From positions 35,484,001-35,608,000 of the forward strand of contig OX597815.1 in NCBI GenBank assembly GCA_951406725.2: a stretch of DNA of 124,000 nt, read 5' to 3'. The position numbers and the translations under genes are program-made. Of this stretch, positions 3,774 through 120,514 are shown in pieces. Numbering within the stretch: the first letter of the stretch is position 1; each line of letters opens with the position of its first letter. The notes under the pieces were generated by a model. That model ran no database searches and was not told where the DNA came from. It was given only the letters and a program-made list of their open reading frames with translations. The DNA comes from Octopus vulgaris (lineage: Eukaryota).

Positions 3774-4170
3774 GGTGGCGAGCTGGCAGAAACGTTAGCA
3801 CGCCGGGCGAAATGCTAAGCGGTATTTCGTCTGCCGTTACGTTCTGAGTTCAAATTCCGCCGAGGTCGTCTTTGCCTTTCATCCTTTCGGGGGTCGATAA
3901 ATTAAGTACCAGTTACGCACTGAGGTCTATATATTCGACTTAATCCGTTTGTCTGTCTTTGTTTGTCCTCTCTGCGTTTAGCCCCTTGTGGGTAGTAAAG
4001 AAATAGGTATTTCGCCCCCGTCGCTACATTCTGAATTCAAATTCCGCCGAAGTCGACTTTGCCTTTCATCCTTTCAGGTTCTATAAATTAAGTACCAGTG
4101 GAACACTGGGGTCGATTTAATTGACACATCCCCTCCCCCAAAATTGCTATCCTTGTGGCAAAATTTGAAA
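3773..4170 (+). mobile_element. tRNA-derived SINE family A, one full copy plus a tandem partial copy
   Basis: Head ggtggcgagctggcagaaacgttagc, B-box-like gagttcaaattcc, central ctttcatcctttcggggtcgataaattaagtacc (resembles the MetaSINE central domain as recalled), tail aaagaaatag; many copies in the window. Confidence 0.85.
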
Positions 4171-5526: not shown

Positions 5527-5950
5527 TGTATGTATGTATGTATGTATATATATACATATATATATATGTGTGTATGTGTGTGTGTGTGTGTATATATATA
5601 TATACACACGTACGTATGCATAAATATTATAGAAGTATATACACATACATATATATACATACATAAACATACATATACACACATATATGTATATGTATGT
5701 CTACATAAATATACACAGTAACACCTACATATTACATACACACACAGACATACATGCATGCATATATATACATAGATATATACATGCATACATACATACT
5801 TACATACATACATATACACACATACATGCACACGGACAGATATATAAGAGTGTGGTAAAAGACATCTAGCAAAGGAATCGCAGTGAGATCGAACTCCAAC
5901 CAGTGGGCTGTGTGACAAACTCCTTGACTCTACAACCATGCCAAGGTACA

Positions 5951-6382
5951 AGGTGGCGAGCCGGCAGAAACGTTAGCACGCCGGGCGAAATGTTTAGAAG
6001 GTGGCGAGCCGGCAGAAACGTTAGCACGCCGGGCGAAATGTTTAGAAGGTGGCGAGCCGGCAGAAACGTTAGCACGTCGGGCGAAATGTTTAGAAGGTGG
6101 CGAGCCTGCAGAAACGTTAGCACGCCGGGCGAAATGTTTCGAAGGTGGCGAGCCGGCAGAAACGTTAGCACGCCGGGCGAAATGTTTAGAAGGTGGCGAG
6201 CCGGCAGAAACGTTAGCACGCCGGGCGAAATGTTTAGAAGGTGGCGAGCCGGCAGAAACGTTAGCGCGCCGGGCGAAATGTTTCGAAGGTGGCGAGCCGG
6301 CAGAAACGTTAGCACGCCGGGCGAAATGTTTAGAACGTGGCGAGCCGGCAGAAACGTTAGCACACCGGGCGAAATGTTTAGC
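5951..6382 (+). repeat. tandem array of 9 x 48-bp SINE-A head units
   Basis: Unit aggtggcgagccggcagaaacgttagcacgccgggcgaaatgtttaga; period 48 verified; continues into the SINE body. Confidence 0.95.
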
Positions 6383-6750
6383 GGTATTTCGTCTGCGTTA
6401 CGTTGAGTTCAAATTCCGCCGAGGTCGACTTTGCCTTTCATCCTTTCGAGGTCGATAAATTAAGTACTAGTTACGCACTGGGGTCGATGTAATCGACTTA
6501 ATACCTATGTCTGTCCTTGTTTGTCCCCTCTGTGTTTAGCCCCTTGTGGGTAATAAAGAAATGGGTATTTCGTCTGTCTTTACGTTGAGTTCAAATTCCG
6601 CCGAGGTCGACTTTACCTTTCATCCTTTCGGGATCGATTAAATAAGTACCAGTTACGCACTGGGGCCGATGTAATCGACTTAATACCTATGTCTGTCCTT
6701 GTTTGTCCCCTCTATGTTTAGCCCCTTGTGGGTAATAAAGAAATAGGTAT
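6383..6750 (+). mobile_element. SINE family A body, duplicated in tandem
   Basis: Body and tail at about 6383-6560, second body at about 6565-6745. Confidence 0.85.
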
Positions 6751-29479: not shown

Positions 29480-32200
29480 CTGGTTGCAACAAAGTTTTTA
29501 ATACAATTTTAATTTTGACACAACGATCTCCATTTTGTTCGTCCCGAGGCTGTTCACTCAAAGGTGTTGTGAGCTATCTTCATCTCTAAGACGTTACTCT
29601 TCAGCTTGTCCTTATATCTGATCCATGGTCGACCAATATTCCTGTGCTCACTCTCAGGCAGGCTGTACATGAGGACTTTGGATATTCTTTCGTTACTCAT
29701 TCTAACGATATGGCCAACCCAGCGCAATTGGAAGCTCTCAATTCCACCAATCTTACACTTGCTAAACAAGTCGGCATTAGAAACTTTGTCTTTAGGGAAT
29801 AACCGCAGATTGTCCTCAAACAGTCTTTGTAGAAGATGTCCAGTTGGTTAATGTGTCATCTAAAGGGTATCCACGATTCTGAGCCATACAAGAGAGTAGT
29901 AAGGATGGCTACTTTATAGACCTGTACTTTGGTGTCAAGAAGTTTCATGCTCCTTTCATTCCCTAGGCGATGACAGAGTTTGCCAAGTGCGCTGGGTGCC
30001 TTTGCAAGACGGTTGGCGATTTCATCATCAATGGAAGCACTCAAATTCACTTTACTACCAAGATATGTAAACGGCTTCACATAATTTAGGCTTTTTTCCA
30101 TCAACCTGTATAGGAGTGTCAGGGAAATTGTGAACCGGTGGCTTCAACTTGACACCTCGAATTTGTTTAGGAATAGGGCAAGGCTGGTGTCTTCCGTCTT
30201 CTTTATGCTGATGGTCAGACCAAAGGCTAATGTGTCATTTTCTGTTAAGGAGTAACTTAGCGATTCGATAAACACGAAATGACAAAATAAGTGCCTATTT
30301 GAAATAAGAATAAGGGGTGATATTCTTTTCTACTCTAGGCACAAGGCTCGAAATTTTGGAAGAGTAGCTAGTCGATTAGATCGCCCCCAGTATGCAGCTA
30401 GTACTTAATTTATCGACCCTGAAAGGATGAGAAGCAAAGTCGACCTCGGCAGAAAACCGGTCTAGAAATTCCTGGGCTTCCTCTAAGGATGTCGCTACTA
30501 GTGCAGCAGCATCTGCAAAATGTAGATAACGAATGATACTGATGTGTAGCAGTGGTCTGGCTTTGAAACGCTGATGATTGAATAGTCCACTACTTGTTCG
30601 AAGCTGGAATTTGATACTACTTTGTACGTAGTCAAAAGTATACCTCAGCGTCACCGAAAAACAAAGAGTGCAAACAAAACAGAGGCCATAACACAATCTT
30701 GCTTTGTGCCGTTTTATAACGTCGAAGGAAGCCGAAGATTCCCCACCAGACACGACAGCAGCCTTCATTCCTTCATGAAAAGAGACGATAACATTCAACA
30801 TCTTGTCAGGTATACCAAGCTTTTCCAGAACTTTCCATAGTGCTTGCCAGTTAACAGTGTTGAAGGCCTTAGTAAGGTCAATGAATGCCATGAACAACTC
30901 TTGTACCTTCTCCATGACTTGTCGGAGGTAAAAGATCATGTCGATAGTGCCACGACCAGAGCGAAATCCGCACTGTGATTCTGGGTAGACATCATTTACA
31001 ACGTGTTTGATGATCCTGTTGAGAATGAGCCGAGCAAGAATCTTACCAGCAAAAGACAGAAGCGATATTCCACGGTGGTTATCACAGACACTTCTGTTTC
31101 CTTTGTTCTTTTAAAGATGTTGAATCGAAGCATCCTTGAAGTCCTGTGGTACACGGCCTACCATCCAAATCTTTATGAAGAGATCATGCAAATTCTCAAA
31201 AGCGTCTTTCCACCATGTTTGTAGATTTCAGAAGGAATAACATCCCTGCAAGGTGCTTTACCAGAAGAGATCTGTTTAATAAAGTTTACCACTTCCAGAA
31301 AGGTTGGCTCCAGAGACAGTTCCGGTATTTCAGTTTCCAGGAAGGTTGTCTCCAGAGACAGTTCCGGTTTTTTAGTGTGCTGTGGGACAGATATTATGAC
31401 GTCATCATTAGTGACTGAGGTGGAGTTCAACACGGCTTCCAAGTGATCTTTCCATCGTTTCAAGATGTGAGATTTGTCGGTCAGCAGTGTCTCTCTATTC
31501 GATGAAAAATTAGGAGTAACACTGTGCTCTTGAGGATCATTCACTTTCTTGAGGCCATCATAAAAGGCTTTAGAATCCTTTCTGTCTGCAGCTTCTTGGA
31601 GGTCAGTAGCCTTGAAAGACCACCAAGCCTCCTTCATCTGTCTAAGAGCATGTTACACCTGGCCTCTGCATTTCTTGCAGGTATTCTCTTTTCTGGATGA
31701 GCTCTTATCATTTATCCATGTTTTGTAAAAGTTGTGCATTTTATCTATCAACTGTTGGACATCTGTGTTGTTATTGTTGAACCAATATTGATGTTTACGA
31801 ACAGGAATTTCAAGAATCTCTACAGATGCAGTGTGCGTTGCATCACGCAAAACTTTCCAAGATGATTCTATGTCATCATTGATATCAACAATGTTGAGTG
31901 CAGTGTCCAACTTGATAGAGAGTTCAGCCTACTTTTCAACAGTTTCCAAAGGCAGAACATTAATGTGCTTAGGCACTGATGACTTTTGTAGTCTTGTGTG
32001 TTTCTGATGGAACGTAACCTTACTACGGAGAAGAGAATGGTCAGTGATATAGCAGGCGTTATGAAAAGAACGTGTAATGTTAAAGTTCCTAATATCTCGT
32101 TTCTTAGTGATAACATAGTCTATGAGATGCCAATCCTTAGATCTAGGATGCATCCAGGTCATCTTGCAATCATTTTGCTGTTGAAAAAAAGGTATTTGTG
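29480..32200 (-). mobile_element. decayed RTE (BovB-like) LINE, endonuclease-RT remnants, interrupted by a SINE fragment at about 30330-30460
   Basis: ORF-track peptides MTWMHPRSKDWHLIDYVIT, AFIDLTKAFNTVNWQALWKVL, HFADAAAL and FTYLGSKV. Confidence 0.85.
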
Positions 32201-40815: not shown

Positions 40816-43800
40816 GTAAGTATAAATTCGACTGTAAATTCCATTCAAAGTTCAAAAGTATGATATTCCGTGAATGTCACCTTACAGATTTGTATTTATG
40901 TTTGGTGTTTCTCTTAATATTTACTGATAGCTTATTGTGAGGGGACTTTTGAAGTTTAGAGGGTAGAGATGTGAATGACATTTTCCTGCATCCGTTTTTA
41001 TCTTTAAATAATTACACTTATTGCCATATATTTGCATGTATTTCTTTATCTGCTTGAGAAGTGCAGTGCTCGTAGCCTTTTCACATCCTCCTAACATGTA
41101 TAATATAAAATTATATACGTCTTCCTTTTGTGTTATTGAGGGTCACTAAATGGCTCGTATCCTGTGACTAGCGCTAGACAATGTCCTCAACAACGACACA
41201 GTTTACGCGGGTCAAATCCATCAGCTGAGGGAAAGCACTGTGTTGTCCGACTTGTTCGAAATGGGTGGGTCGAATTTCCCTCAAATCACCAACTACCGTT
41301 TTAAACAAGAAAGATCCATTAAATCATGTATTCCTACATATCTCTCCAAAATAAAATGTGATGGCCACAACTAATCAGCAACAACAACCTCACTAACTAC
41401 ATACTGAAGTGCATATCACCCATTAAACGGTGGAGACGTGTTCATTAACATGTAAAGCGGAGTAAATTAGAAATGAATGAACTCCACCACTTCGAGATGC
41501 CCGATGTATACTAGATAGAGTTATGCCTGTCATTCGTATTTCGTTCTTCTCTTTCTCTTCTATTATCATTCCATTCATATCTAAGATGCATTATAGGAAT
41601 AATTCAACCCCAACAGTGGACTGGTACTTTTACTTTAGTCACTTCAAAAGTTAAATTTGGCAAGATTTTAATTCAGAATGAAAGAACTTTGCCAAAATAT
41701 GACCAGGCATTTTAGCCATAACTCTAAACTTTCATCCAATCCACTGCCTTAATCATCATCGTTTAACGTCCGTTCTCCATGCTAGCATGGGTTGGACGGT
41801 TCGACCGGGATCCAAGGTAGTTTGGATGAACTGGGGCTTCTGTGAAGTTGGTGCAGGAAACAGCCATAAACTCACACATCTCTCCTCATTCATCCATAGT
41901 ACATGACCATACCAGCGCAGACGTCTCTCTTGCACGCCACGTCTGATGCTTCTTATGTCCAGCATTTCTCTCAGGGTGCTTTCACTCTGTCGTGTGTGCA
42001 CACTGACATTACACATCTAGCGGATCATGCTAGCTTCATTTCTTTCAAGCCTACGCATGTCCTCTGCAGTCACAGCCCATGTTTCACTACCGTGAAGCGT
42101 GGCAGATCACATACATGCATCGTACAATCTACCTTTCATTCTGAGCGAGAGGCCCTTTGTCACCAGTAGGGGTAGAAGCTTTCTAAACTTTGCCCAGGCT
42201 ATTCGTATTCTAGTGGTGACACTCTCTGAACATCCACCTTCACTACTAACTTGGTCACCCAGGTAGCGGAAACTATCAACTACTTCTAGTTTCTCTCCCT
42301 GGAGTGTGATGGAATCTGTTTTCTGAGTATCTGTGATGTCTATTGCACCTGTGCATCTGCCGCACATGAAAGCTATCTTCTCAGTTAATTTTCCTTTGAT
42401 GTTGCTGCACCTCTTATGCGTCCATAGCTTATACTGGGTACATCTTATGGAGTTTCTACCTACACCTTTTCTACAGATTGAACAGGGCCAGTTACTTGAG
42501 GGGGTGTGTGATGAGTTCGCTTTCTTACTTACTATAACTTTGGTCTTTGCTACATTGACTCTTGTAGTTGTCGAACCAGGAATATGGCATCAGTGGTGCT
42601 TCTACCTAGCACAAAACCAAACTGCATCTCATCTTAGCAGACTCTCTCCCTAATGAGATGGGCTATGACCCTCTCTGTGACCTTCATCACCTGATCTAAC
42701 AGTTTAATACCCCTGTAGTTATTTCTATCTAGAGCATCACCATTACCCTTGTAGCAGTTGACTATGGTGCTGCTATGCCAGTCATTGGGTATGACTCCAT
42801 TATGAACTACCTGGTTTACAATGTGGGTGACTAGGCCATAGTCCACACCACCAGATGTTTTAAGCATCTCAGCAGTGATTCCTGATGGGCTGGGGGCTTT
42901 TTCTGGCTTCATACCCTTAACTGTTTTATCTATAAGGGAGCTGTCTATTCAGATAGCTAGTCCCTCTACTGGGTCAACATTTAGCAGGCTAAATTTTGCG
43001 ATCAGCGAAGATCATAAATTGATCTTTTTTCCAAAAATGAGCAATTTCAGTACAACAAAAATGGTAGTAGCTAATCATAAAAATCTAAGGTCATTTTCAG
43101 AATCAGCACCATCAAATAAGCTACAAAAACATGTTCTGTTTCTTGGCACCAAAAATTGTGTTGACCAGTGTTATTAGTGATGGAAGCAGTATCAGTACTA
43201 AAAGGCAGTCTTTATATTCAACTTCATATGGATCTCTTGTTAGAATACCAAATACTGAGGTATTCATCTTGAGAGGTCCTCTCTAACATTTTATCTTTCT
43301 GAGAATAAGCAGCTATATAGGCCCTAGAGGTCTGATTTATTCCCTCTTGTAAAAATTAATTTTTGTGCTTCGTTGAAAAGAAGTCCTAATTATGTCTTAA
43401 TTATGTCATTACACAGGAATCAAACCCAGATCACTCGTCACAACGGTTATTTTCAGGCATCCAGCCAACATCAGATGTTCCACATTTAGGCAATTATATT
43501 GGTGCTATCAAGAACTGGGTCAGTCTACAGGGCAAACACTCTTCAGTAATCCTCAGTTTAGTTGACCTTCATACAATTACACTGCCTCACAAACCTCAAC
43601 AGCTCAGGTAGGTGTGAAAGCATTAAGAAACATTTTCATTGAAATAACTGCTTTGAAACATGTACCAAATTATCTGTTCATTTGTCTTAATTCCATTAGA
43701 ATTTGATATGAAGTGTGCTGTAGTTTTAACTAAGATTTGGGTTTTAAATATCATGGATATTTAAATATTTAACCCTTTCGTTACCAAACCGGCTCTGGCT

Positions 43801-46800
43801 CTGAGTACAAATATCTTGTTTTCATAAGTTTTGAATTAAAATCTTCCACCAAACCTTAGTCACAATTTATGTTCCTAACACTAGCTGAATGTTAACTAAG
43901 TTATTTTGATAAACTCTTTGTTATATTTAAAGTAATTGAAAGAAACACAGAGCATCTCAAAATAAATACAGTAACAAAAGGGTTAATGAAGCTGACTGGC
44001 TACTACAACAACCCTAGTCTCTGCATATCACTACCCTCACACATTTCTCAGCAACAATAATAACTTCATTCCATCTCCAATTTCTCCATATGTCCTCATA
44101 AAATGGCCCTAACCCCAAAATATCAAAGAAATACAAGTTAAGATGTAACTGTGCTGTCTTCATTTTTGTATTTCATTTCTTACAGTTTCAGTCTTAACAA
44201 GTTTTTATCTAACTTAATATTACACAATGCTTCGCCCAAACTTCTCAATTCTAATATAACCTAAGATTTAGTTGATAAATACGGATTGTTCAAAGATGAT
44301 GTTCCATTGAGTTATACTTAACTGATGCTAAATTTCACTATCCCCAAACAAATACAATATTTCAGATAACTTTACCTACCTTTATGAAGCTTCTTCCTTA
44401 ATTAATGAATCATTACTTCAATGTCTTAGATAAGTTTTTTTTTTTATACATATATATTTACAGCCACACTACATCTTAATCTGTTTGATCTGTAATTATC
44501 ATAATTGTTTCATTCTCAGATATATTACACTGTATTGGATTGAATTCGAATTAGGAACCTTTATTCCTAAACTAAGGCTCTTGTCTACTACTACTATATC
44601 ACTGACTCTTGAACAATTAGTGTAGATGTAAATATGAAAATATGTTTCATCTTTAAAAAGGAAAAATTATTATTGTTAAGTTTATGTACCAATATTATTG
44701 GCATTTCATTACTGTCCATACTTTATACAGTAAACTCTACGGTATTACATACTGTCATATATTAGGTATAATTTTAATGATGATGTTGATGATAATGGTA
44801 GCAGTGAAGGTGGCGAGCTGGCAGAAATGGTAGCACGCCGGGTGAAATGCATAGCCGTATTTCGTCTGCTGTTATGTTCTGAGTTCAAATTCCGCCGAGG
44901 TCAACTTTGCCTTTCATCCTTTCGGAGTCGATTAAATAAGTACCAATTATGCACTGGGGTCGATTACATCGACTTAATCTGTTTGTCTGTCCTTGATTGT
45001 CCCCTCTGTGTTTAGCCTCTTGTGGGTAGTAAAGAAATAGATAATGGTAGCAGTGGTATGTGTGATAGTGTTGCAGTTGGTGCAGATACCACTAATAGAA
45101 CTGGTGTTACATTTATTGTTTCATAAGGTCAGGTGCTTTGCCCTATTGACATGGTTTTAAGTGGAAAAGTTAAGTCCTTTAGTGAAGCACACCAGATATT
45201 AAAGATGACAAGCAAAGAATATTATGTACCAGTTCCTACCAGCTATGTGCACTAAAGCATATAGAATTAAGGATTTGGGCCACAGACAATAAAACACCTG
45301 TATTAATATTAATATTGTGTGCAAGTTCACTATCTTAATATAGAATTCTAGTATTAACCAAAAGTTTTACACTACTTTTTCATGAGAGAAACATCATGAA
45401 ATTTGTGACTTTTAGGAAATAGTTAAATAGAATTTGCAATATTCAAGGCTATCTCAAGGGCATTAAGCATTATAATTCTAAATCAAAGTCAATACATAGA
45501 TTTAGCTATATATTCTTTACCTATGATCTTAAATAAATGTTGATTTAAAGTGATAGTATGTTGCCAACTTAATGTGGCAGTCCCACAGGGGAAGAATGCT
45601 ACTGCTATTTAGCCCAAGGAAACACCGTTTCTAGTTGGCCATGACACATTTTCTGTGTCCTTTGAAAACATAAGGACACAGAATATGTGTTGTGGCCAAT
45701 TGGAAACGGTGTTTCCTAGAGATAAATAACAGCAGCATTCTTCCCCATCATGGGACTGCCACATCAAGTTGGCAACATACCATCACTTTAAATCAACATT
45801 TATTTAAGATTATAATCTATTTAAGCATTATAATTCTAAATCAAAGTCAATACATATATTTAGTTATATATTCTTTACCTATGATCTTAAATAAATTTTG
45901 ATTTAAAGTGATGGTATGCTGCCAACTTGATGTGGCAGTCCCATGATGGGGAAGAATGCTGCTGTTATTCATCCCTAGGAAACACCGTTTCCAATTGACA
46001 ACAACACATATTCTGTGTCCTTATGTTTTCAAAGGACACAGAAAATGTGTCATGGCCAACTAGAAACGGTGTTTCCTTGGGCTAAATAGCAGTAGCATTC
46101 TTCCCCTGTGGAACTGCCACATTAAGTTGGCAACATACCATCACTTTATCATGCTACTACTGTATAAATCTCCCTGAGAGATTTAGAAATGTAATATTTC
46201 TAAATGTTGATTTCTTTCAATATTTCAAAAGGTCTCTGATCAAAATAACTTTCATTATTATCATTTTAATCTAATAATATTAAAAATTCTATTTTTATTG
46301 TAAGCTTTAAATATTTAATATTGATACAAATGAAAGTTCCTCAATAAAACAATTAACATCTAAAATAAGCTTCTAAATATTTAAAATTTTAATTTTTACA
46401 ATAATTTCTTTAAGGAATAACATTCTAGACATGACTGCTTGCCTTCTCGCCTGTGGTTTAGACCCTACAAAAGTCATTCTTTTCCAGCAATCTCAGGTGA
46501 GTTGTTATATTTATTTAGAAGACTTCCTTAGTCACTGAAGTTTTAGTATTTAAAATTAAGTATCAGTACAATAAGTGAAGCCATAGAAACTCACAAACGT
46601 GTTCAGAGAACACTATAGAAAATTCTTAAATTATTTAGGTTTTGCAGAAACCTTTGCTTAACTCAGCTGAAGGATTTTTTTCCTTTATTTTTAAGTTTGT
46701 ACATTAATCCTAACATAGGTAGGATGGTTCTTATAAATTTGGACATTTGCTTGAACGTGGTTAACCATCTGAACGTGGCCGTTGCCAGTGCCGCCCCGAC

Positions 46801-75221: not shown

Positions 75222-78200
75222 CTACGTAAAGCTAGAACATCCCAATGCTACACATATGTATCTGAACAGGTTTAGAGATGAGCTACATTTAGAATAAAGA
75301 ATTCAAATTCTCCATTTTACCTTCAAACATTCAATTTTAGGGAGGATTCCTTGATGAAGTGTGAGTGTGTGTGTGTGTGCATGTTTCCTTGTGTGTGTGT
75401 ATTTGGGAATATGTCCATGTTTATACTGTGTAACTTTGATCACACCTCTTTCAATTCCATGATTTTGCATTAGAAAACATTAGTATAACACTTACAAACA
75501 TACTGTCTCTGCTTTTCTTTCAAACATTCAACTTTGGAGAGAATTTTTTGATGAAATGTAGTTCCATTGCTTTTCGGTATTGCGGATCATCCCATGCACA
75601 TTTGTAAAAGGGAAAAATTTTGAATTTTCCATCGCCACATATTTCTAGATACTTACTTAATGGAATCTTGCGTAATTCCAGATGCTTACTTAATGGAATC
75701 TTCCTTAATTCTTCTTGTTGGATATGTTGCCTGTAGATTCTTGCACGTTGGCAGAGGGAATTATTTGCTTTGCCAATGTAATTTTCTTTGCAGTTTGGGC
75801 AGGTAATGTAGTATATGAGGTTTTGCGTTTTGCAGTTCATATTTATTTTAAAAAGGAATCTGATAGATGTATGTGTGTGTGTGGGTGGATGTGGCATGGC
75901 TGTGTGGTTAAGAAGCTTACTTCCCAACCATGTGGCCTTGGGTTCAGTCCCGCTGCACAACACTTTGGGTGTCTTTGCTAAAGTGGATTGGGTACATGGA
76001 AATTGAAAGAAATCTATCATGTGTGTGCGTCTGTGGTGGAGGTGCATGTGTATTTGTGTGTGTTTGCTCCCACAGCTGCTTGACAACTAGTGTTGGTTTG
76101 TTTATGTCCCTGTAATTTAGCCGTTCAGTAAAAGGGTCTAATACAATTAATACTGAAGTTAATTAATTCAGCTAAAACCAATCAGGGTGGTGTCCCAGCA
76201 TGGCCACAGTCCAATGACTGAAACAAGTAAAAGCTAAAATGTAACGATAAATAATATATACACACATATATCCATATGCGTGCATACATACATATATTTA
76301 TTCATTTATTTGTATTTATGACTAGCAGTATCACTCAGCGTTGCTTGGGTTTGTTTCGACCCTTTCGAATTGGAATTTTTGAAAAGTAAAAATTTAGCAT
76401 TATGTAGACAATGTATCCAACCATATCACAAAATAACTACATATCTGTATTACTAATATATTTAGCTTCTGCAAAGGCAATAAATTTACAAGAACTGTAA
76501 GAGCATTAGACACATCCATTGTGATATTTCATTACATCCTGTAATGACTTCACTTCAATTCCTTCTGAGAACAACTGTGCCTTTTGTCCTTTTCAGGTCA
76601 ATGGAATAAATTACTGGGGTAAATTTAATCAGCTATGCCTTCTCCAGAATGTATGGCATTGTACTAATGTTAGAAAGCAATATATTTAGGTTGTGCAATG
76701 AAAGTTTTAAATGAACAACTGGAAGTTGTGTGTTAAAATCATAACTAAGATTGTACAGAATTGAAAAAAATGGAAGGTGGGTTGATCACTTTTTAAATGC
76801 AAGCTTCGGAGCTTAAAATAATGAATTCAAACATTTTATTTCAACTACTTGATTATGTACATAGACAAGTTAAATATGAAGCTCATTTAAACAAGTTAAA
76901 TATGAAGTCATGCCCCATGTTTCACTGCCATGTAGCATGGCTGTTCATACACATGCATCATACAGTCTACCTTTTACTCTGAGCGAGAGGCCCTTTGTTA
77001 CCAGCAGAGGTAGGAGCTCTCTGAACTTTGTCCAGGCTATTCTGATTCTAGCAGCTACTCTTTCAGAGCATCCACCTTCTCACTACTGACTTGGTCATCT
77101 AGGTAACAGAAACTATCAAATACTAGTAGTTTTTCTCCCTGGAATGTGACAGAAGCTGTTCTCTGCACATTTTCAGTATTTATTGCTTCTGAGCATTTGC
77201 CACGTACAAAAACTATCTTCCCAATTAGCCTTCCTTTGATATTGCCGCACTTCTTAAATGCAAGCTTCAGAGTTTAAAATAATGAATTTAAGCATTTCCC
77301 TAAGATCAAGCAGGTCCATCTACCTGAAGGGATTTGTGGTTTGTCTGCCTTTCTACTTATTAAGATTTTGGTTTTAGCTAGGTTGACTCTAAGGTCCTTC
77401 GATTCTAATCCTTGCTTCCACACTTGAAACTTCTCCTCTAGTTCTGATAGTGACTCAGCAATTAGAGCAAGGTCATCAGCATAGAGGAGCTCCCAGGGGC
77501 ATCCTGTCTTGAATTCCTCTGTTATTGCCTGGAGGACTATGATGAATAAGAGGGGGCTGAGGACTGATCCTTGGTGGACCCCTACCCCTACCCAGAATTC
77601 TTCACTGTATTTGTTGCCAACTCTCACCTTACTGACAGCATCCCTGTACATGGCTTGCACAGCTCTCACTAACCATTCATCTATCCCTAGTTTTCTCATT
77701 AACCACCAGATAAGGGGATCGGGGGAACCTGTCAAAGGTTTTCTCCATGTCAACAAAAGCCAGGTACAGAGGCTTATCTTTGGCTAGGTATTTCTCCTGC
77801 AGCTGTCTTACCAGAAATGTAGCATCAGTAATGCTTTTCCCTGGCATGAACCCAAACTGCATCTCATCTAGGCTGACTCTTTCCCTAATTAGTTGGGCTA
77901 TGACCCTCTCTGTGACCTTCATTACCTGATCCAACAACTTGATCCCTCTGTAATTATTTGTATCTAATGTGTCACCTTTACCTTTGTAGCAGTTGACTAT
78001 GATGCTGCTACACCAGTCATTGGGTATGACTCCTTCTTGTATCACTTGGTTGACTATATGGGTGACTAGGCTATAGCCAACACCGCCAGATATTTCGAGC
78101 ATCTCTGCAAATGATTCCTAATGGGCTGGGGGCTTTCCCTGTCTTCATACCCTTAATTGCTTTATCTACTAAGGTATTGTCAATTTGGATGGCTGGTGCC

Positions 78201-79606
78201 TCTGTTGGGTTGGCATTCAGCAGACTCTCTTTTTCCCATTCATTCACTTTATTTAGTAACCTTTCATAGTGGTATCTCCAAACCTCTCTCTTTGCAGCCT
78301 CGTTTAATGCAAATGAACCATCATCCATGACATCACAATTCTCTCTCACATAGTCTTGCAACACAAAATAGGTCAAGTCTTTGGTACTCATGGTACAGAA
78401 CATTGGCAAATTTTTTTTTATCTGCTTCCCCTCTGGCTAAATAAACCTGTCTCCTAGCTCCCCTTCAGGCAGTCTGATACAATATATATATATAGATTAT
78501 AATAAGAGATATATACATGCATATGTAGTTTATGTATGTTTAGTTCTGGTATGTTGATGTAGTTTATATATATATTTAGATTTGGTAGGTGTATGTTTTG
78601 ATGTCATATGTCTGCACTGCATACTCACAAATAGAGATGACATAATGATTGTGTAATTTTATCTAGTGCAAATAAATTGCCAATTTTCATTTCATCAGCT
78701 ATACTACAATGCATTATAACATACAATTTGCATACATCAACTGTCAAGCTAAGCTGCTACCATTTAATTGTTGTAACAGCAGCCAAAACCACTGTGACTT
78801 GAAACTAAGAAGGAAGATAGTAAGCACATATTCAAGCACAGATAAATACTAGCCACAGGAGAATGTAAGAAATTAAGAATGGTAGTCTGTATCACTATCA
78901 CATAATGTCAAAAATTTAGGTAGCAACACTTGGTGCTGAGTTGTTATTTTCATATCCTGTTCAATATTTACAAAACGGGTCTCCTGTTCTAAATTTACTT
79001 TACATTTCTTTCAATATTTATAAATAAAGTGTATAGTTATTTAAACATTAAGGTGTTTATTTCCAAGAAACTATTATCTTGTCCATAATCTTCTTTGCAC
79101 TCTGTATTCAAAACCACAGTTTACAAATCCTGTATGAGTATAAATAAAGAGGTTTTTAACTACATTCATAAGTTTTCTGAAGACAGCATCAAATTTTAAT
79201 GTAAACATAACTTTATTCTTTCATTTCTTTTTCCAGAAATATGGGTTAAAGATCTTTCTAAGAAATCCAAGTTCTTACACACCGTTGTTGCAACCAAATA
79301 GTTCAAATCCCAAAGCTAAATCTCTCACACTGGGACGAGATGGCCACCTTAATAAACTGCAAATTGCTCAGTTCTCTCAATCTGATGCTGAGGTAAAGAA
79401 TCATAAATTCATTTATTGTAAACACAAATATGTTTTATAAATCTATGTAACATAATAATGAAGGTTTATTAAATGAAGGTTCATAAAATGCATCTTCATT
79501 CAAATTTTTGCACCTATATTATGAAGATATTTTTCATCTTCAATTCCAGTCAACATTTACAAAACAATATTTCACAAACATTTCTAACAAAGGTATAATA
79601 CTGTGA

Positions 79607-114756: not shown

Positions 114757-115965
114757 TTATCATTGTTACATTTCTCAAATTGATTGTATGTCGATATCTT
114801 TTGATCAGGAGCGAGTCATAACCATTGACCATGGGTCCTGTGAACTTTCTCATTCCAGTTACATTGACACAACTCTTCTCAAAATATTGGCTGTTCCAAG
114901 TAGTGCTGTTTTTCTGAAGTATCGGTGTTGATAGTGAATACAAGTTTGTCGAGCTACTTCTGAAATTAGTTTGTTACGGTTCCAAGTGCCCCTATTACAA
115001 GAGGTATAACCTCCACCTTCTACAGTTCCATAATAATTATTATTCAGTAGTCTTATTTTAATCACGTACTTTCACTGCAATACCGAGCGCAACTCTGTGC
115101 TGTGGTTTGTTGTGATACTCTTATTTTTACAGTATTGAACGTGTTTTACGTAGGATGTGTGCGGTGCCTATTAGTGCTATTTTCTGTATGTTATATATAC
115201 TTGTTAATCCTGATATTTTTATTATGTATTTGTCTGAATATGCTTTTATCAAACCTAATGCACATGGCCTAGTGGTTAGAGCAGCGGTCGAGGGATCGCG
115301 GGTTCGAATCTCAGACCGGGTGATGTGTGTGTTTATGAGCAAAACACCTAAGCTCCACGCGGCTCCGGCAGAAGGTAATGGCGAACTTCTGCTGACTCTT
115401 TCGCCACAACTTTCTCTCACTCTTTCCTCCTGCATCTTGCAGCTGATCTACGACAGACCGGCGTCCCGTCCAGGTGGCGAACCTATTCGCTAAGGAAACC
115501 GGGAAACTGGCCCTTATGAGCCAGGCATGGCTTGAGAAGGAACAAACAATGCCTCGATTATGTGAGGAATTATTTCTGTTTTTAAACTCCACATTCGAGT
115601 TAGCTTTATTTCCAGAGTTTTGTATTTTGAAGAGAAACATTATCATCTGTTGGTATTGATCCATTGATTAGAAAGCACTTGTTTTCTTGTTGATCTCTGA
115701 CAACTATATCCGGCCTATTGGTCTTAATTTCTGGCATATCCCAGAGTATGGTTGCTTTCTCATTTTCTGTGACCTTTTCTTGTGTGTGCCTATAACATCT
115801 TTTTTCTGTTATTACTCCATAGAGTTGGCATAGCTTCCAGTGTATATAGATTATAACTCTGTTGTGTCTGAATATATTCCTTTTTAGTCAGACTGGGCAG
115901 CCAGAGACAATATGATTTATTGTTTCTTGTCCATCTCCACATATTCTACAGTTACTTGTATTTCG
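114757..115965 (-). mobile_element. two adjacent R4/Dong-like 3' fragments; the upstream one is interrupted by a SINE (115258-115545)
   Basis: CRICGDGQETINHIVSGCP, RPDIVV, IQKIALIGTAHILRK and KTALLGTANILRRVVSM* peptides. Confidence 0.8.
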
Positions 115966-116217
115966 GATCTTTTCCTTTTGATGGACGGAATTCAACACAA
116001 TTTCTAGTTAACTAAACAATTTGAAACTTCGTATACTGGTAGAATGTGTCAAAAGAAAACATTATTTTCACTTGGCTTTTTTGAGAAAATTGTAATTTGT
116101 AAGTTTAACGTAGTTTAATTCTTCGAATTTTAACCAATGAATTGCCAGTATTGAACTCCTAATGAATATATAACAAATGCTGTATATTTGTTTAAATAAT
116201 CAAAAATGAAATACGTA

Positions 116218-117696
116218 GTAGGCGGCCTGGTGTGTGTTCGCTTTCGGGTTACGGTCTGTTATAATTTTTTTATCTGAAGTTTATAGTTGGATTGCCATTG
116301 ATTTTGTTGCAGGTTTTCCCTTTTGGGATCACTTTTTAAAAAAAATTATTTAAAACTGTTAGTGTCTTGCGACACATTGTTAGCTTTCACAGGCTTGTTT
116401 CCTGTTGGCTTCCCCCTTTGGTGGGTGAAGCGTTTACATTTTGTGTAGGATGTCCAACACAAAATGGATGACAACACATTTTACGAGCCCTGGGAGAGGA
116501 CTACACAAGTGATTCCGGTGACAGTACGGACGCGGCACGAAGAAGGATGAAACGTTACAACATCAAGCCTGAGGCAGACAAGAAGTTCCAGACATTTCTT
116601 CAGGGGAAGAGAGACAACGTGAGGCTAAATCCCACCAAGAAGGTGATGGAAGGAATTAAGAGAACAACAATTGTTTAAAGGACGCTATGTTTGAAGACCA
116701 GAAAAATAGAGATAGCGTCAATAGAGGACATTGAAAAGCATTAAAGCCTATTATGTATAAATTGGTGTACGTTAAGCGCGGAAGAAAGTTTGGAACGGTG
116801 GAGGCGCAGTTTGTGACTGAGAGCGATGCCATCATGCAAACAAGCAGATTAGCTCTTTTACCGTTATGTCTCAGCAAAAGAAAGACGAAAATAATGATAA
116901 ACGGGTTCGATCCGGAAATCAAACCAATGTGGCACCTGGCGGCGGCCTTCGCCAACATAAAAGAAGTGACTCTATTGGAGTTGGAAGAAAAAGGTACCCA
117001 GAACTGATGTGGAAGGGGCGTAAGAACAACAATCCAGGCCACACCAACAGATATTGATAGCATACCGGAGTTTGTTATCCTTCCCTATGATACAAGAGTG
117101 AAGGTCGCTGCTCAGGGCAGAGTACCAAAGTGCTTCGGATGTGGGCAGAAAGCCAGATGGAAGCAAGTATGAAGCAGGAGGAGGTGATGGTGGAGACAGA
117201 GAAAGACACACCGTCTACTTCAAGGGTTAAGGTTTTAGGGTTAAGGTTGTCATAAATAACAGTGACAAACAAAATATACACCGCCGGAAGTTCTTGTTGA
117301 CAAACAACAGCAGTAATTTTATTCAGCTGAATACACGTCATTGATTGGTTGAAATTACCGAAATACAAGAACTTTGACGTGAAATAACATCGTAAATATA
117401 AGTTTTTCTTAAAAATGCGAAGAGTAAAAGATATTTTATATGACACACATTCTACCAGTGTCCGAAGTTTGAAAGTGTTTAGTTACAAAAATTATTTTTT
117501 AACTCAGTAGGTCAAAAGATAAAGATCCAAAAAATGTTCAATGATGTTGCTTGGATGGTGGGGCACGGGTGACTATCATTTCACCTTTTCATTTATTAAT
117601 CATACATCTGCTCATTCGATTTTTTTTCGGCCCCATATGTAATGTCCTGTATTGTCCCCTCTTTGTTGGTTCCTTGTGGACAATAGAAAGAATGAG
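116218..117696 (+). mobile_element. decayed ORF1-only (HAL1-like) non-LTR element E1, with a MITE inserted at about 117205-117530
   Basis: KRGRKFGTVEAQF..., GRVPKCFGCGQK zinc-knuckle remnant; no ORF2; 3' end resembles the SINE A tail. Confidence 0.6.
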
Positions 117697-117702
117697 TACG
117701 TA

Positions 117703-119955
117703 GCTGGTGGTTTGAGATATTCGTATCGGAGTTAATTTTGTCGTGTTATTTGTTAGACGTAAGTCACTTTGTTGAATATTTGTTGAAGGTCTCCCTTCGG
117801 CGGTGTACCCAAGATTATTGATTGTTACTATTGAAATTGTTGATTATTGTTATTTTTGAATTGTTATTTTTTTCCCCATTGTGGGAAAAATGGAGAAGGT
117901 GCCAACAGGAGGCCACAGCTATGCGGCTTCAACCGGTAGAGGAACAGAGGTTGATGCGCTGGAGTTGCAATAAGTAAAAGTCGAGCCAAAGAAAATGAAA
118001 GAATGTGAGAAATTGCTGGAAAAGGAAGGAAATACACTGAGACTAACGCCGCCTGCAGAACTTACAAGTAATGTAACCAAAAGGATAGTGAATTTATAAA
118101 ACACTGAAGGTAGCAAGCAGAAAGATCGAATTTGTAACAATCGAGGCTATTGAGGAATGGTTGAAGGAAATAAAGAGGCTGACCACGTTCATTAGCAAAG
118201 GAAGAAAGTACGGCACTGCGGAGGTGCGTTTCGCGACGGAGGATGAAGCGATTAAGCACTCCACAGTAGCCATAAGAACAGAGGAATGGGTACTTTTGCT
118301 GTCCTATTGTGGCAAGCGTGTTGCCAGAGTAAGAGTTAGCAAAGTGCCACCAGAGATAAAAGAAACATGGCTTATGGCAGCCATTATGTTTAATATGGAG
118401 GAGGAGGCCAAGATTCTCAAGGCCACAAGAACCAAAAGGGTGAACTATTGGGGATATGGCATAGAAATGGCCATTCAAGCGAATATAGAAGACCTCAATA
118501 GAATTGCGGAAGAAATAGTTCTGCCTGAGGACGTAAGGCTGCGAGTGGTGGTGAAAAAGGTCACATTACGGCGAGGTGCCCCCAGAGAGAACAACAGATG
118601 AAACAGACTGAGAAGCAACAAAGTGCAGACCAAGTGGTACAAGTCGAGGTAAAGGAGACAAGAACGGATGAAGAATTTACGGTAGTAAAAAAAAAAACGA
118701 AAGAGAAGTGATAGAGTAAGCTCTCCGTCAGCGAGGCAGAAAAAGAAGAAAGAAACGGTAGAGAAAGAAGTTATGAAGGAAGTCAGAAGGAAGGAAAATA
118801 AAATGGTGATTGACAAGGAGATCGAAAAGGAACTTGAAAAGGAGATCGAAGAGGAGTTTCAGAAGGAGGAGGATTCAGGAGAACAATTAAAAGGAAGGAA
118901 GGAAGCACTCCGTCGGTTACGACGATGAGGGTTCCGGTTGATCCGAATCAACGGAACAGCCTGCTCGTGAAATTAAAGTGTAAGTGGCTGAAAACTTCAC
119001 AGACACGTGTACCCTTAACGTAGTTCTCGGGGATATACAGCGTGTCACAGAGAGTGACAAGGCCGGCCCTTTGAAATACAGGTACAACAGAAACAGGAAG
119101 TAAGAGAAAGTTGTGGTGAAAGAGTACAGCAGGGATCACCACCATCCCTGCCTGAGCCTCGTGGAGCTTTAGGTGTTTTCGCTCAATAAACACTCACAAC
119201 GCCCGGTCTGGGAATCGAAACCGCGATCCTATGACCGCGAGTCCGCTGCCCTAACCACTGGGCCATTGCGCCTCCACGGAGAACAATTAAACGAGGGTGA
119301 AATGGAGAGATTATTCAGAATGGAAAGAGAAAAGGTACCAGCAGTGGAGCAGGAAAAGGGAAAGCAAGTAAGAAAGCCCCCAAAATATCGATGGAATTTT
119401 GTGACATAGGCGAAAAACAAGGAAACAGAACAGAAAATAATGAAATTTAAGTCTATCATAAGGGTGAAGCTGCCCATTGTTGTGTATTCGGAGAATGTGA
119501 AGGCCATTGTGGTCGACAGGGAGAAATACAACAGGCTAAGAGATGTGTGTGGAGAGGGAATTGATCCGCCAGGAGTAGCGGTGCAGTTCGATGGATTACC
119601 ACCAGTAGTGGAACTGAAAGATCTCGAACCTTTTATGAAATATTAAAAAAGGAAAAAAGTAAGTGAAATTGTTTATTTGAAAAAAAGAAAAGAAGTAAAA
119701 TTGTTTTATTTAAAAAAAAAAAAGAGAGAGAGAGAAACGATGATAATGGGAAAAAATAAAGGAAATTGAACGATTGTAAACAGTGTATTAAACGTTCAAA
119801 TGGTACTGCATGAGGAGTGGGGCCCATGCAGCCATTTCATTTTCATTATATATCTTCATTTTCATTCGCTTTGTTTTTGTCCCCACTGTGATGTTCTGTC
119901 TGTGACCTTGTAGTGCCCCCTCTGTGTTATGGCCGTAGAGTCAAATAAAGAACAG
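117703..119955 (+). mobile_element. ORF1-only (HAL1-like) non-LTR element E2
   Basis: ATG 117890 (SYAA motif); L1/Tx1-ORF1-like KGRKYGTAEVRF...RVRVSKVPPEI...LRVVV; E/K-rich linker; C-terminus ends at 119646; 3' UTR ends in a SINE-A-like tail; no EN/RT. Confidence 0.65.
118892..119277 (-). mobile_element. SINE family B inserted in E2 with a 14-bp TSD
   Basis: TSD ggagaacaattaaa at 118878-118891 and 119278-119291. Confidence 0.92.
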
Positions 119956-120514
119956 TACGTATAAGCGGTCAAGAAAATAAATACATAATTAAAAACCGCC
120001 AGTCACATGGCATGTGTGAATTTCAGGTGTACTCGTCTGCTTTTTTTTTTTATATATATATTGTTGATTACCCCTTCTCCTTTCTGCTGTTGGTTGTGCC
120101 TCCTTCGCAGTTTACAGCTATTTGATCTTTGTTCCTATACCGGTGCTTGCGAAATAAGCAAACTACAAAACTTAATACACACCCACATCATACACAGAGG
120201 ACGAACTGACACATTACAAAGCCGATATGTTTTCCACTCCAACAATGTATCTACTCAACATTCGTCGAAAAAACAAACTACAAGATAAGACTATCTTATT
120301 TACATAGTTGCTTGATTACAGATACTAGGTTTGAGCTATGTTCTCTACAACCCACTCATGCACTGAATTTCCTCAATCTGGTTACAAATGATTTCCGCCA
120401 GAACAGACATTTTATCTATCAATCTTATCGCACCCGTTTCCTGATTATACCGATTGTTAAAGGATGTAAAATGTATTTTAATATACTGTCCAGGTAAAAA
120501 GTGGTGAACTGGCA

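Follow-up and report, generated by a model that had tools for sequence, protein, structure and literature searches.

Several described systems come close to the retroelements that we report here from Octopus vulgaris, two head-to-tail units without a reverse transcriptase (RT), named E1 and E2, which lie in a stretch of 124,000 nucleotides (GenBank assembly GCA_951406725.2, contig OX597815.1, positions 35,484,001 to 35,608,000 of the forward strand) referred to below as the window. TR-GAG and LARD elements are retrotransposons of the long terminal repeat (LTR) type that are non-autonomous and have two LTRs, a primer-binding site (PBS) as well as a polypurine tract (PPT). Among the long interspersed elements (LINEs), members of the Tx1 group are reportedly sequence-specific, as with Tx1L in Tx1D, Keno and Mutsu, and we know of no LINE described as targeting the boundary between the U3 and R regions of an LTR. 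The 3′ end of HeT-A, an element of Drosophila telomeres, is said to promote transcription of the downstream unit and to create an LTR-like terminal redundancy. HeT-A carries an ORF1/gag open reading frame (ORF) only, with no ORF2 (PMC13534243). A protein combining RNA-recognition motif (RRM) and CCHC domains is the ‘type I ORF1p’ typically found in the Tx1 group and in plant L1 elements (PMC5203782). Finally, template switching between co-packaged RNAs is a published source of complex LTR retrotransposons in which an LTR is held in common (Sabot and Schulman 2007; PMC1950507), and the arrays of Cassandra are a further example of such complex elements (PMC7215508).

Set beside these systems, the E units are a variation on HeT-A, HAL1 and the complex LTR elements; what is unusual in them, and can be tested, is their association with an LTR's U3/R boundary. 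Like HeT-A, they carry an ORF of the ORF1/gag type only and form head-to-tail arrays with related elements; unlike HeT-A, which belongs to the Jockey clade and attaches to chromosome ends, they are found inside an LTR at its putative U3/R boundary or in dispersed short arrays, their protein has tandem RRM-like domains in place of a Jockey-type gag, and the promoter at their 3′ end is a predicted one. With mammalian HAL1 (half-L1) they share the lack of RT, an ORF1 under selection and the need for the RT of another element, whereas HAL1 has an ORF1 of the Transposase_22 kind (type II) and ends like those of L1, and E has neither a match to Transposase_22 nor a demonstrated LINE parent, and its ends are LTR-like. 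The RRM and CCHC architecture, together with strict insertion at a single position and in a fixed orientation within another repeat, recalls the Tx1-group LINEs, but these have an ORF2 with apurinic endonuclease and RT, and no ORF2 was found in the E units. The complex LTR elements and Cassandra arrays resemble E in the alternation of internal regions and LTR-like junctions and in a proposed origin by aberrant strand transfer between RNAs packaged together; their partners, however, are ordinary elements with PBS and PPT, whereas E has no PBS or LTRs of its own and brings in a foreign ORF. TR-GAG and LARD elements are likewise non-autonomous, restricted to a gag-like ORF and dependent on an autonomous LTR element, but E does not have the LTR pair, PBS and PPT that they retain.

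The sequence TACGTA at positions 116212, 117697 and 119956 of the window bounds two plus-strand units, E1 (116212–117696) and E2 (117697–119955, approximately 1.86 kb once a nested short interspersed element (SINE) is subtracted). Searching the window's own genome with each unit placed them in two dispersed families. E1 is an old, disrupted member, with relatives 78–82% identical over unit positions 1–940 and 1318–1491, and the relatives of E2 are 76–90% identical over unit positions 1–1175 and 1582–2265; the two units have 64% nucleotide identity with each other and approximately 30% identity at the amino acid level. All of the comparisons were made between natural copies. The units follow a common plan, with a head TACGTAG-Y-AGGCGG, a 5′ leader, one ORF and a tail ending ..ATAAAGAA plus 2–5 nt. 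Neither RT nor endonuclease was found in E1, in E2 or in approximately 20 genomic relatives, which bears out the earlier description, made from the window's letters alone (the sequence-only reading), of two head-to-tail units with an ORF1-like frame and neither enzyme. Copies with both ends are contiguous at approximately 1.85 kb in the E2 family and approximately 1.5 kb long in the E1 family, and no readable genomic copy of E contains an ORF2; since all of the two-ended copies are short, the absence of ORF2 is a trait of the family. E1 and E2 represent two families of an octopod group of RT-less retroelements of 1.5–1.9 kb. Mixed and same-family arrays recur (E1–E2, E2–E2 and E2 tail–E1), and the seamless junction of tail, TACGTA and head seen in the window is met again at C11, C5 and C12 and at four sites of the exact motif genome-wide.

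TACGTA is where a longer motif of 14 nt, TACGTAG-Y-AGGCGG, begins, and this motif is common to the E heads and to the LTR of another element, an LTR retrotransposon that we name E3. Genome-wide there are 43 exact copies of the 14-mer as against one of a reversed control, so that the recurrence of TACGTA at issue in the sequence-only reading is real, although TACGTA here is neither a general target nor a target-site duplication (TSD) and belongs to the longer motif. E3 is a real, canonical LTR retrotransposon. Its LTR of 225–250 bp starts with TGTTGTAGGG, ends in ..ATTATAACA and has TG..CA termini; a PBS (TGGCGACGAGGA) follows the 5′ LTR, a PPT stands just before the 3′ LTR, the gag region matches Pfam DUF7083 (3e-19), an integrase fragment is also present, and 5-bp TSDs flank the copies at L062 (GTATG) and L006 (AGATG). 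Full copies measure approximately 4.5 kb by coordinates. In uninterrupted E3 LTRs (L064, L063 and L011) there is a single TACGTA, approximately 98–130 nt from the LTR start and approximately 35 nt after a TATAAG box, and from this spacing we infer that U3 meets R, and transcription starts, at this point. The E3 copies beside E2 units at L062, L063 and L064 (respectively C4 97.75 Mb, C5 27.38 Mb and C4 75.73 Mb in G000) are all internally deleted, the N-terminus of gag being joined to the C-terminus of integrase or to sequence beyond it, and non-autonomous derivatives of E3 seem to be common.

It is at this point of the LTR that the E units are found. The flanks of the relatives have tail-like sequence before every head and head-like sequence after nearly every tail. 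A recurring block ending ..TATAAGTAAAGAGAAG..ACCAGAG precedes the E2 heads and another, beginning TACGTAGTAGGCGGTCAGAGATAGTCG.., follows the E tails for approximately 110–125 nt; these blocks are the two halves of one E3 LTR. The order U3, E head to E tail, R–U5 was read in one orientation at L003, L004/L063, L006, L009, L010/L064, L032, L033 and L062, so that at no fewer than eight loci an E unit lies exactly at the LTR-internal point; otherwise, units abut another unit. A PBS follows at L009 and L033, which places the E unit in the 5′ LTR, and at L062 a single E3 flanked by GTATG has E2 in both of its LTRs, the 5′ copy of E2 being internally deleted. L006 is a solo LTR, flanked by AGATG, with two E2 units inside. 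The possible preference for a target proposed by the sequence-only reading needs restating: it is for the E3 U3/R point or the side of another unit and not for TACGTA in general.

Among the 43 exact motifs in the genome, 25 run on into E3 R. An E-type tail stands before 11 of the 43 (seven of these 11 being E3 R) and E3 U3 before eight of the 43, only four of which are uninterrupted LTRs. Both ends of the E unit resemble the LTR on either side of the point. The E2 heads match E3 R at approximately 27 of the first 31 nt and the E1 heads over the first 14–15 nt only, the families diverging beyond, and the end of the E tail (..ATAAAGAAAAGAG) resembles the end of E3 U3 (..GTATAAAGAGAGAG). No LTR pair belonging to the E units themselves was found, their terminal repeats being limited to the R-like motif of 14–20 nt, and an E3-type PBS was absent within 320 nt of six E heads, whereas the E3 positive control was detected. 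An E unit therefore resembles an LTR element's RNA, running from an R-leader to a U3-like end, but without the parts for priming its own reverse transcription. We also considered E2 as the LTR of E3 itself and rejected this, as it is with the sequence following E2 that the head of E2 shares homology, and a separate LTR of 225–250 bp belongs to E3.

The protein encoded by the E units has two RRM-like domains, a CCHC knuckle, a helix rich in lysine and glutamate and a small C-terminal domain. An intact natural copy of the E2 family (L063) encodes 328 amino acids followed by a small conserved block ending LEPFMKY, and in the O. bimaculoides protein P0002 the ORF1-like part and this C-terminal block form one continuous frame; in L063 and L037 the knuckle is intact and reads CX2CX4HX4C. 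The window units retain the peptide motifs KRGRKFGTVEA and the cut-off knuckle CFGCGQK (E1) and GGHSYAAS, KGRKYGTAEV and RVRVSKVPP (E2). The SYAA motif, ascribed by the sequence-only reading to both units, is present in E2 itself, but for E1 it was seen only in relatives and there as DYAAAA. A confident AlphaFold model built with 51 natural homologues (pLDDT 83) predicts two β-α-β-β-α-β domains along with the knuckle and a long helix; Foldseek matched it to tandem-RRM proteins (IMP3 RRM12, NONO and Sxl) at approximately 1e-5. Pfam scans of the window pieces, one intact relative and the 51 homologues returned zf-CCHC alone, with no match to Transposase_22 or L1 ORF1p, a profile search of PDB sequences gave nothing beyond zinc-knuckle matches, and the ESM Atlas gave leads only, to clusters of ZCCHC3-like proteins and DUF4283. 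By its predicted architecture the protein fits type I ORF1p, which is a resemblance and not a demonstrated membership, and of the L1/Tx1-type assignment made from the letters alone the domain plan stands, while no link at the sequence level was found.

A profile search of 1.8 billion representative proteins found 827 relatives; the ten that were looked up were all octopod and none had an RT, and the nearest proteins came from O. bimaculoides, O. sinensis, O. vulgaris and Argonauta. Nei–Gojobori dN/dS values among eight natural E2-family copies were 0.16–0.44 with a median of 0.25. These data show that the E ORF evolved under purifying selection while the lineages diverged, and therefore that the protein mattered during that time. 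With this value and the lack of ORF2 in all readable copies, the units are not simple deletion products, in agreement with the sequence-only reading. Segments of the E-type ORF are also contained in the Octopus gene models P0008, P0021, P0054 and P0117, which have RGS, WD40, LDL-receptor-A or astacin domains, and these segments represent either exonization or the carry-over of a repeat into the annotation.

The tails of the E units are related to that of SINE A, the most abundant SINE of the octopus, which has 11 copies in the window as against none expected. The stretch that aligns is the last 56–60 nt of E1 and E2, and a local alignment of the E tail with the SINE A tail scored 25, compared with 10.3 ± 1.9 for shuffled sequences (z 7.8; none of 1000 as high). 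An alignment of 16 natural tails (A5) is collinear through to the AAAGAA end, and one subvariant of SINE A (..GTGGACAATAAAGAA) nearly equals the tail of the E1 family. Every member of the E families carries the tail and the SINE body is never alongside, and therefore the tails are not inserted fragments of SINEs, in line with the sequence-only reading. It had also described the 3′ untranslated regions of E1 and E2 as mutually homologous, which is correct for the last approximately 170 nt only; about half of each region is a nested insertion, a foldback repeat arm in E1 and a SINE (SINE B) in E2. RNAalifold found no consensus structure in the 16 tails. A 4-bp stem just before AAUAAAGAA, however, keeps its pairing through two-sided changes, with 79% paired as against 58% in shuffled or slid controls, in a comparison of three lineages only. 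Of the system of LINE, ORF1-only helper and SINE proposed earlier, the homology of the SINE tail and the family restricted to an ORF1-like frame were recovered, but a LINE with the tail was not: no RT-bearing element with the E tail was seen among the copies scored or in approximately 380 kb that was read, which is not a genome-wide search.

The pair of units in the window lies outside an LTR. There is no E3 U3 upstream of it, and downstream the match to E3 R is limited to the first 19–21 nt, a terminal repeat TACGTATAAGCGGTCAAGA at 119956–119974 (plus strand) that is followed by an A-rich run to approximately 119996. Given that its flanks were otherwise no better than shuffles, we rejected the possibility that the dimer sits in a decayed E3 LTR. 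A comparable end was found at L007 (minus strand, approximately 2350–2420 in reverse-complement coordinates; C11 approximately 60.52 Mb in G000), where the breakpoint of an internally deleted E2 unit holds, between the two parts of the unit, a patch of 23 nt from the end of a tail, 20 nt from a head and a short run of A; the patch has the look of a polyadenylated E RNA whose 3′ end was captured through template switching. As two independent ends thus consist of tail, 18–20 nt of R and an A-run, the comparison suggests that E RNAs may be polyadenylated approximately 20 nt into R, downstream of an AATAAA in the tail. A few exactly matching short contigs, which are assembled and are RNA only by a guessed label, fall on an intact relative, with unreadable starts and ends. 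A second dimer outside an LTR (L011/L008) lies in ordinary DNA with no E3 U3 or U5 flanks, and its first unit is 5′-truncated. In terms of a LINE-type insertion signature (3′ A-tail, variable TSD and 5′ truncation), the A-rich end and possible, weak TSD of the window dimer (p ~0.04) and the truncation at L011 compare with seamless positions in the LTR for most E copies.

The reading that we favour as the simplest one, and to which we give about an even chance, is that E is a passenger of the LTR junction that works somewhat like HeT-A and is copied through reverse transcription by E3. Transcription of E would be driven by any promoter upstream, either the U3 of an LTR or the tail of the preceding unit, as for HeT-A in telomeric arrays, and the RNA would run from R through the body and U3-like tail into 18–20 nt of the next R, where it would be polyadenylated. 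Such an RNA might be co-packaged with that of E3, and the E3 RT would copy it between two strand transfers guided by R. In both new LTRs the unit would thereby come to lie between U3 and R, and arrays would arise when the transfers are repeated. The E protein would presumably bind or chaperone its own RNA, the dimer in the window would be a retrocopy of a read-through E1–E2 RNA, and the SINE A tail would have common ancestry with the U3-like tail of E. On this account, E is expected in both LTRs, as at L062, and its junctions are expected to be seamless, as was observed. A bolder version, which we hold only tentatively, is that E is an element of an undescribed kind, protein-coding but RT-less and without LTRs, PBS or endonuclease, having no more than a 5′ end that is R-like and a 3′ end that is U3-like, that enters at U3/R by extra R-guided strand transfers, rides in both LTRs and supplies its host with a replacement promoter; its tail would have seeded, or been taken from, a LINE-mobilized SINE, so linking LTR, LINE and SINE parasitism.

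Several observations weigh against copying by E3. At L063 and L064, E2 is carried in the 3′ LTR only and the 5′ LTR is empty, a pattern that fits later insertion better than co-reverse-transcription. In the copies of SINE A that were read, TSDs are long and variable (16 bp at 44998, for instance) and TACGTA is absent, so that SINE A is mobilized by a LINE, and a shared tail normally implies a shared LINE partner. The window dimer has a possible TSD, ATAAT-Y-AAAAA, which matches at 10 of 11 nt and is weak, and the transcription start, poly(A) site and promoter activity of the tail are all deduced from sequence alone.

An origin from a LINE, which sharpens the model of the sequence-only reading, is the main alternative. 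E1 and E2 may possibly be ORF1-only derivatives of a sequence-specific LINE of the L1/Tx1 type, whose endonuclease would cut at TACGTA followed by a GTAGGCGG-like sequence and whose RT would recognize the tail shared with SINE A; the units would then insert by target-primed reverse transcription, and the homology of head and LTR would stem from master copies resident in LTRs and transcribed from them. We regard this as the less probable origin, yet a serious one. The pair of RRM-like domains with a CCHC knuckle equals the type I ORF1p of the Tx1 group (PMC5203782), L1–Tx1 families are reported to have been recently active in O. vulgaris (PMC13282606), and the homology of the tail to that of a LINE-mobilized SINE, the small tail stem with its compensatory changes and the strict position and orientation of insertion are all in keeping with it, as are the presence of E2 in one LTR only at L063 and L064, the 5′-truncated first unit of the L011 dimer in ordinary DNA and the window site itself, where TACGTA is followed by a near-match to the motif. 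However, no ORF2 element with the E head or tail was seen among the scored copies or the approximately 380 kb read, no ORF1 family is matched at the sequence level and SINE A has no preference for TACGTA; moreover, at L062 E2 has been doubled in both LTRs by LTR-type replication, and the ends of the unit mimic the LTR on either side of the point, a feature for which a model with an endonuclease has no need. That doubling, the solo LTR with its TSD and two units at L006, and the fact that motif sites bearing E are about as many as uninterrupted ones could also be taken to mean that E units are internal parts of long variant E3 LTRs, captured once, whose copies are LTR fragments or solo LTRs and not a separate mobile entity. 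This we consider improbable, as the window and L011 dimers have no E3 U3 or U5 flanks, several diverged E families with differing tails occupy the same point, there are arrays of both heterologous and homologous units, purifying selection acted on the ORF across lineages and L063 and L064 each have one empty LTR. Least probable by far is that the head-to-tail pair in the window arose by local tandem duplication or by the chance adjacency of independent insertions: both units are old and degraded and their nested repeats indicate a locus that was hit repeatedly, but an identity of only 64% between E1 and E2 speaks against local duplication, and the recurrence of the junction at C11, C5 and C12 and at the four exact-motif sites contradicts both forms of this explanation.

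If the reading of E as an LTR-junction passenger is correct, it would add a third route by which a non-autonomous element can exploit LTR retrotransposons, one in which terminal homology to R suffices and neither LTRs nor PBS are needed, and a second independent case after HeT-A of tandem units that promote each other, which bears on the origin of LTRs. Should E instead derive from a Tx1-type LINE, it would represent, for the first time outside vertebrates, an ORF1-only lineage of the HAL1-like kind, and with it would come a LINE whose target is the transcription start of an LTR. Under either reading, relatives of the tail of the most abundant octopus SINE are now located. For annotation, Octopus ‘LTRs’ of approximately 2 kb are composites, TACGTA at these sites is no TSD, and pieces of the E ORF have entered octopus gene models.

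Turning to the anatomy of the two units, all features are on the plus strand unless stated otherwise. In E1, the head motif TACGTAGTAGGCGG (116212–116225), which also occurs inside the E3 LTR, is the putative start of R; it is followed by an ORF1-like remnant (116467–117172) with stops and frameshifts, whose CCHC knuckle is truncated (intact in the relative L037). The arm of a nested foldback repeat, similar to a miniature inverted-repeat transposable element, occupies 117223–117528; it is foreign to E1, being absent from the E1 relatives, and has many genomic copies 91–95% identical to it, usually as inverted pairs. This repeat is abundant, and its arms usually lie 30–100 bp apart. An older arm, inverted and 75% identical, is present just upstream of E1 (115965–116089); we rejected it as the partner of the nested arm, as with so low an identity it is probably an unrelated old copy. 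The 3′ tail of E1 (117529–117696) ends in a U3-end-like terminus, AAAGAATGAG, and its last approximately 60 nt are those homologous to the SINE A tail.

The ORF1-like remnant of E2 (117892–118601) has the SYAA N-terminus and two RRM-like domains and has lost the knuckle that is intact in L063. Because the relatives of E2 are contiguous over unit positions 1–1175 and 1582–2265, the window segment 118882–119278 is a nested insertion. This is SINE B, a tRNA-type SINE on the minus strand that is 95–98% identical to many genomic copies, and its perfect 14-bp TSD, GGAGAACAATTAAA (118868–118881 and 119279–119292), is of the LINE type; the SINE B family is young, with 95–98% identity among copies. A search for tRNA genes in the region gave none. 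The C-terminal coding block of E2 (MKFKSII..LEPFMKY*; 119440–119646) is conserved and is also found in L062, L063 and P0002, and the 3′ tail (119800–119955) contains a doubled TGTCCCC..CTGTG box, has SINE A-like sequence in its last 56 nt and ends in AATAAAGAACAG. The R-like repeat that follows it aligns with the first 21 nt of E3 R and no further.

Elsewhere in the window there are LINE fragments with RT, from at least two families, and a Penelope-like ORF of the GIY-YIG type (30379–31652, 42110–42589, 77277–78436 and 75523–76086, all on the minus strand). A SINE A-like tail was absent from the one LINE 3′ end that was read (41000–42150). SINE A has a short terminal redundancy of its own and forms partial head-to-tail dimers: 17 of 32 copies have, right after the tail AAAGAAATA, the sequence GGTATTTCGTCTG.., with which the SINE unit restarts internally (window positions 3979, 6537, 13359 and 113488, and many other loci), and most of the other copies keep ATAGGTAT after the tail. 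A tandem array of an approximately 48-bp piece of the tRNA-like head of SINE A (..GGTGGCGAGCCGGCAGAAACGTTAGCACGCC..) lies at 5870–6400, directly upstream of a SINE A dimer.

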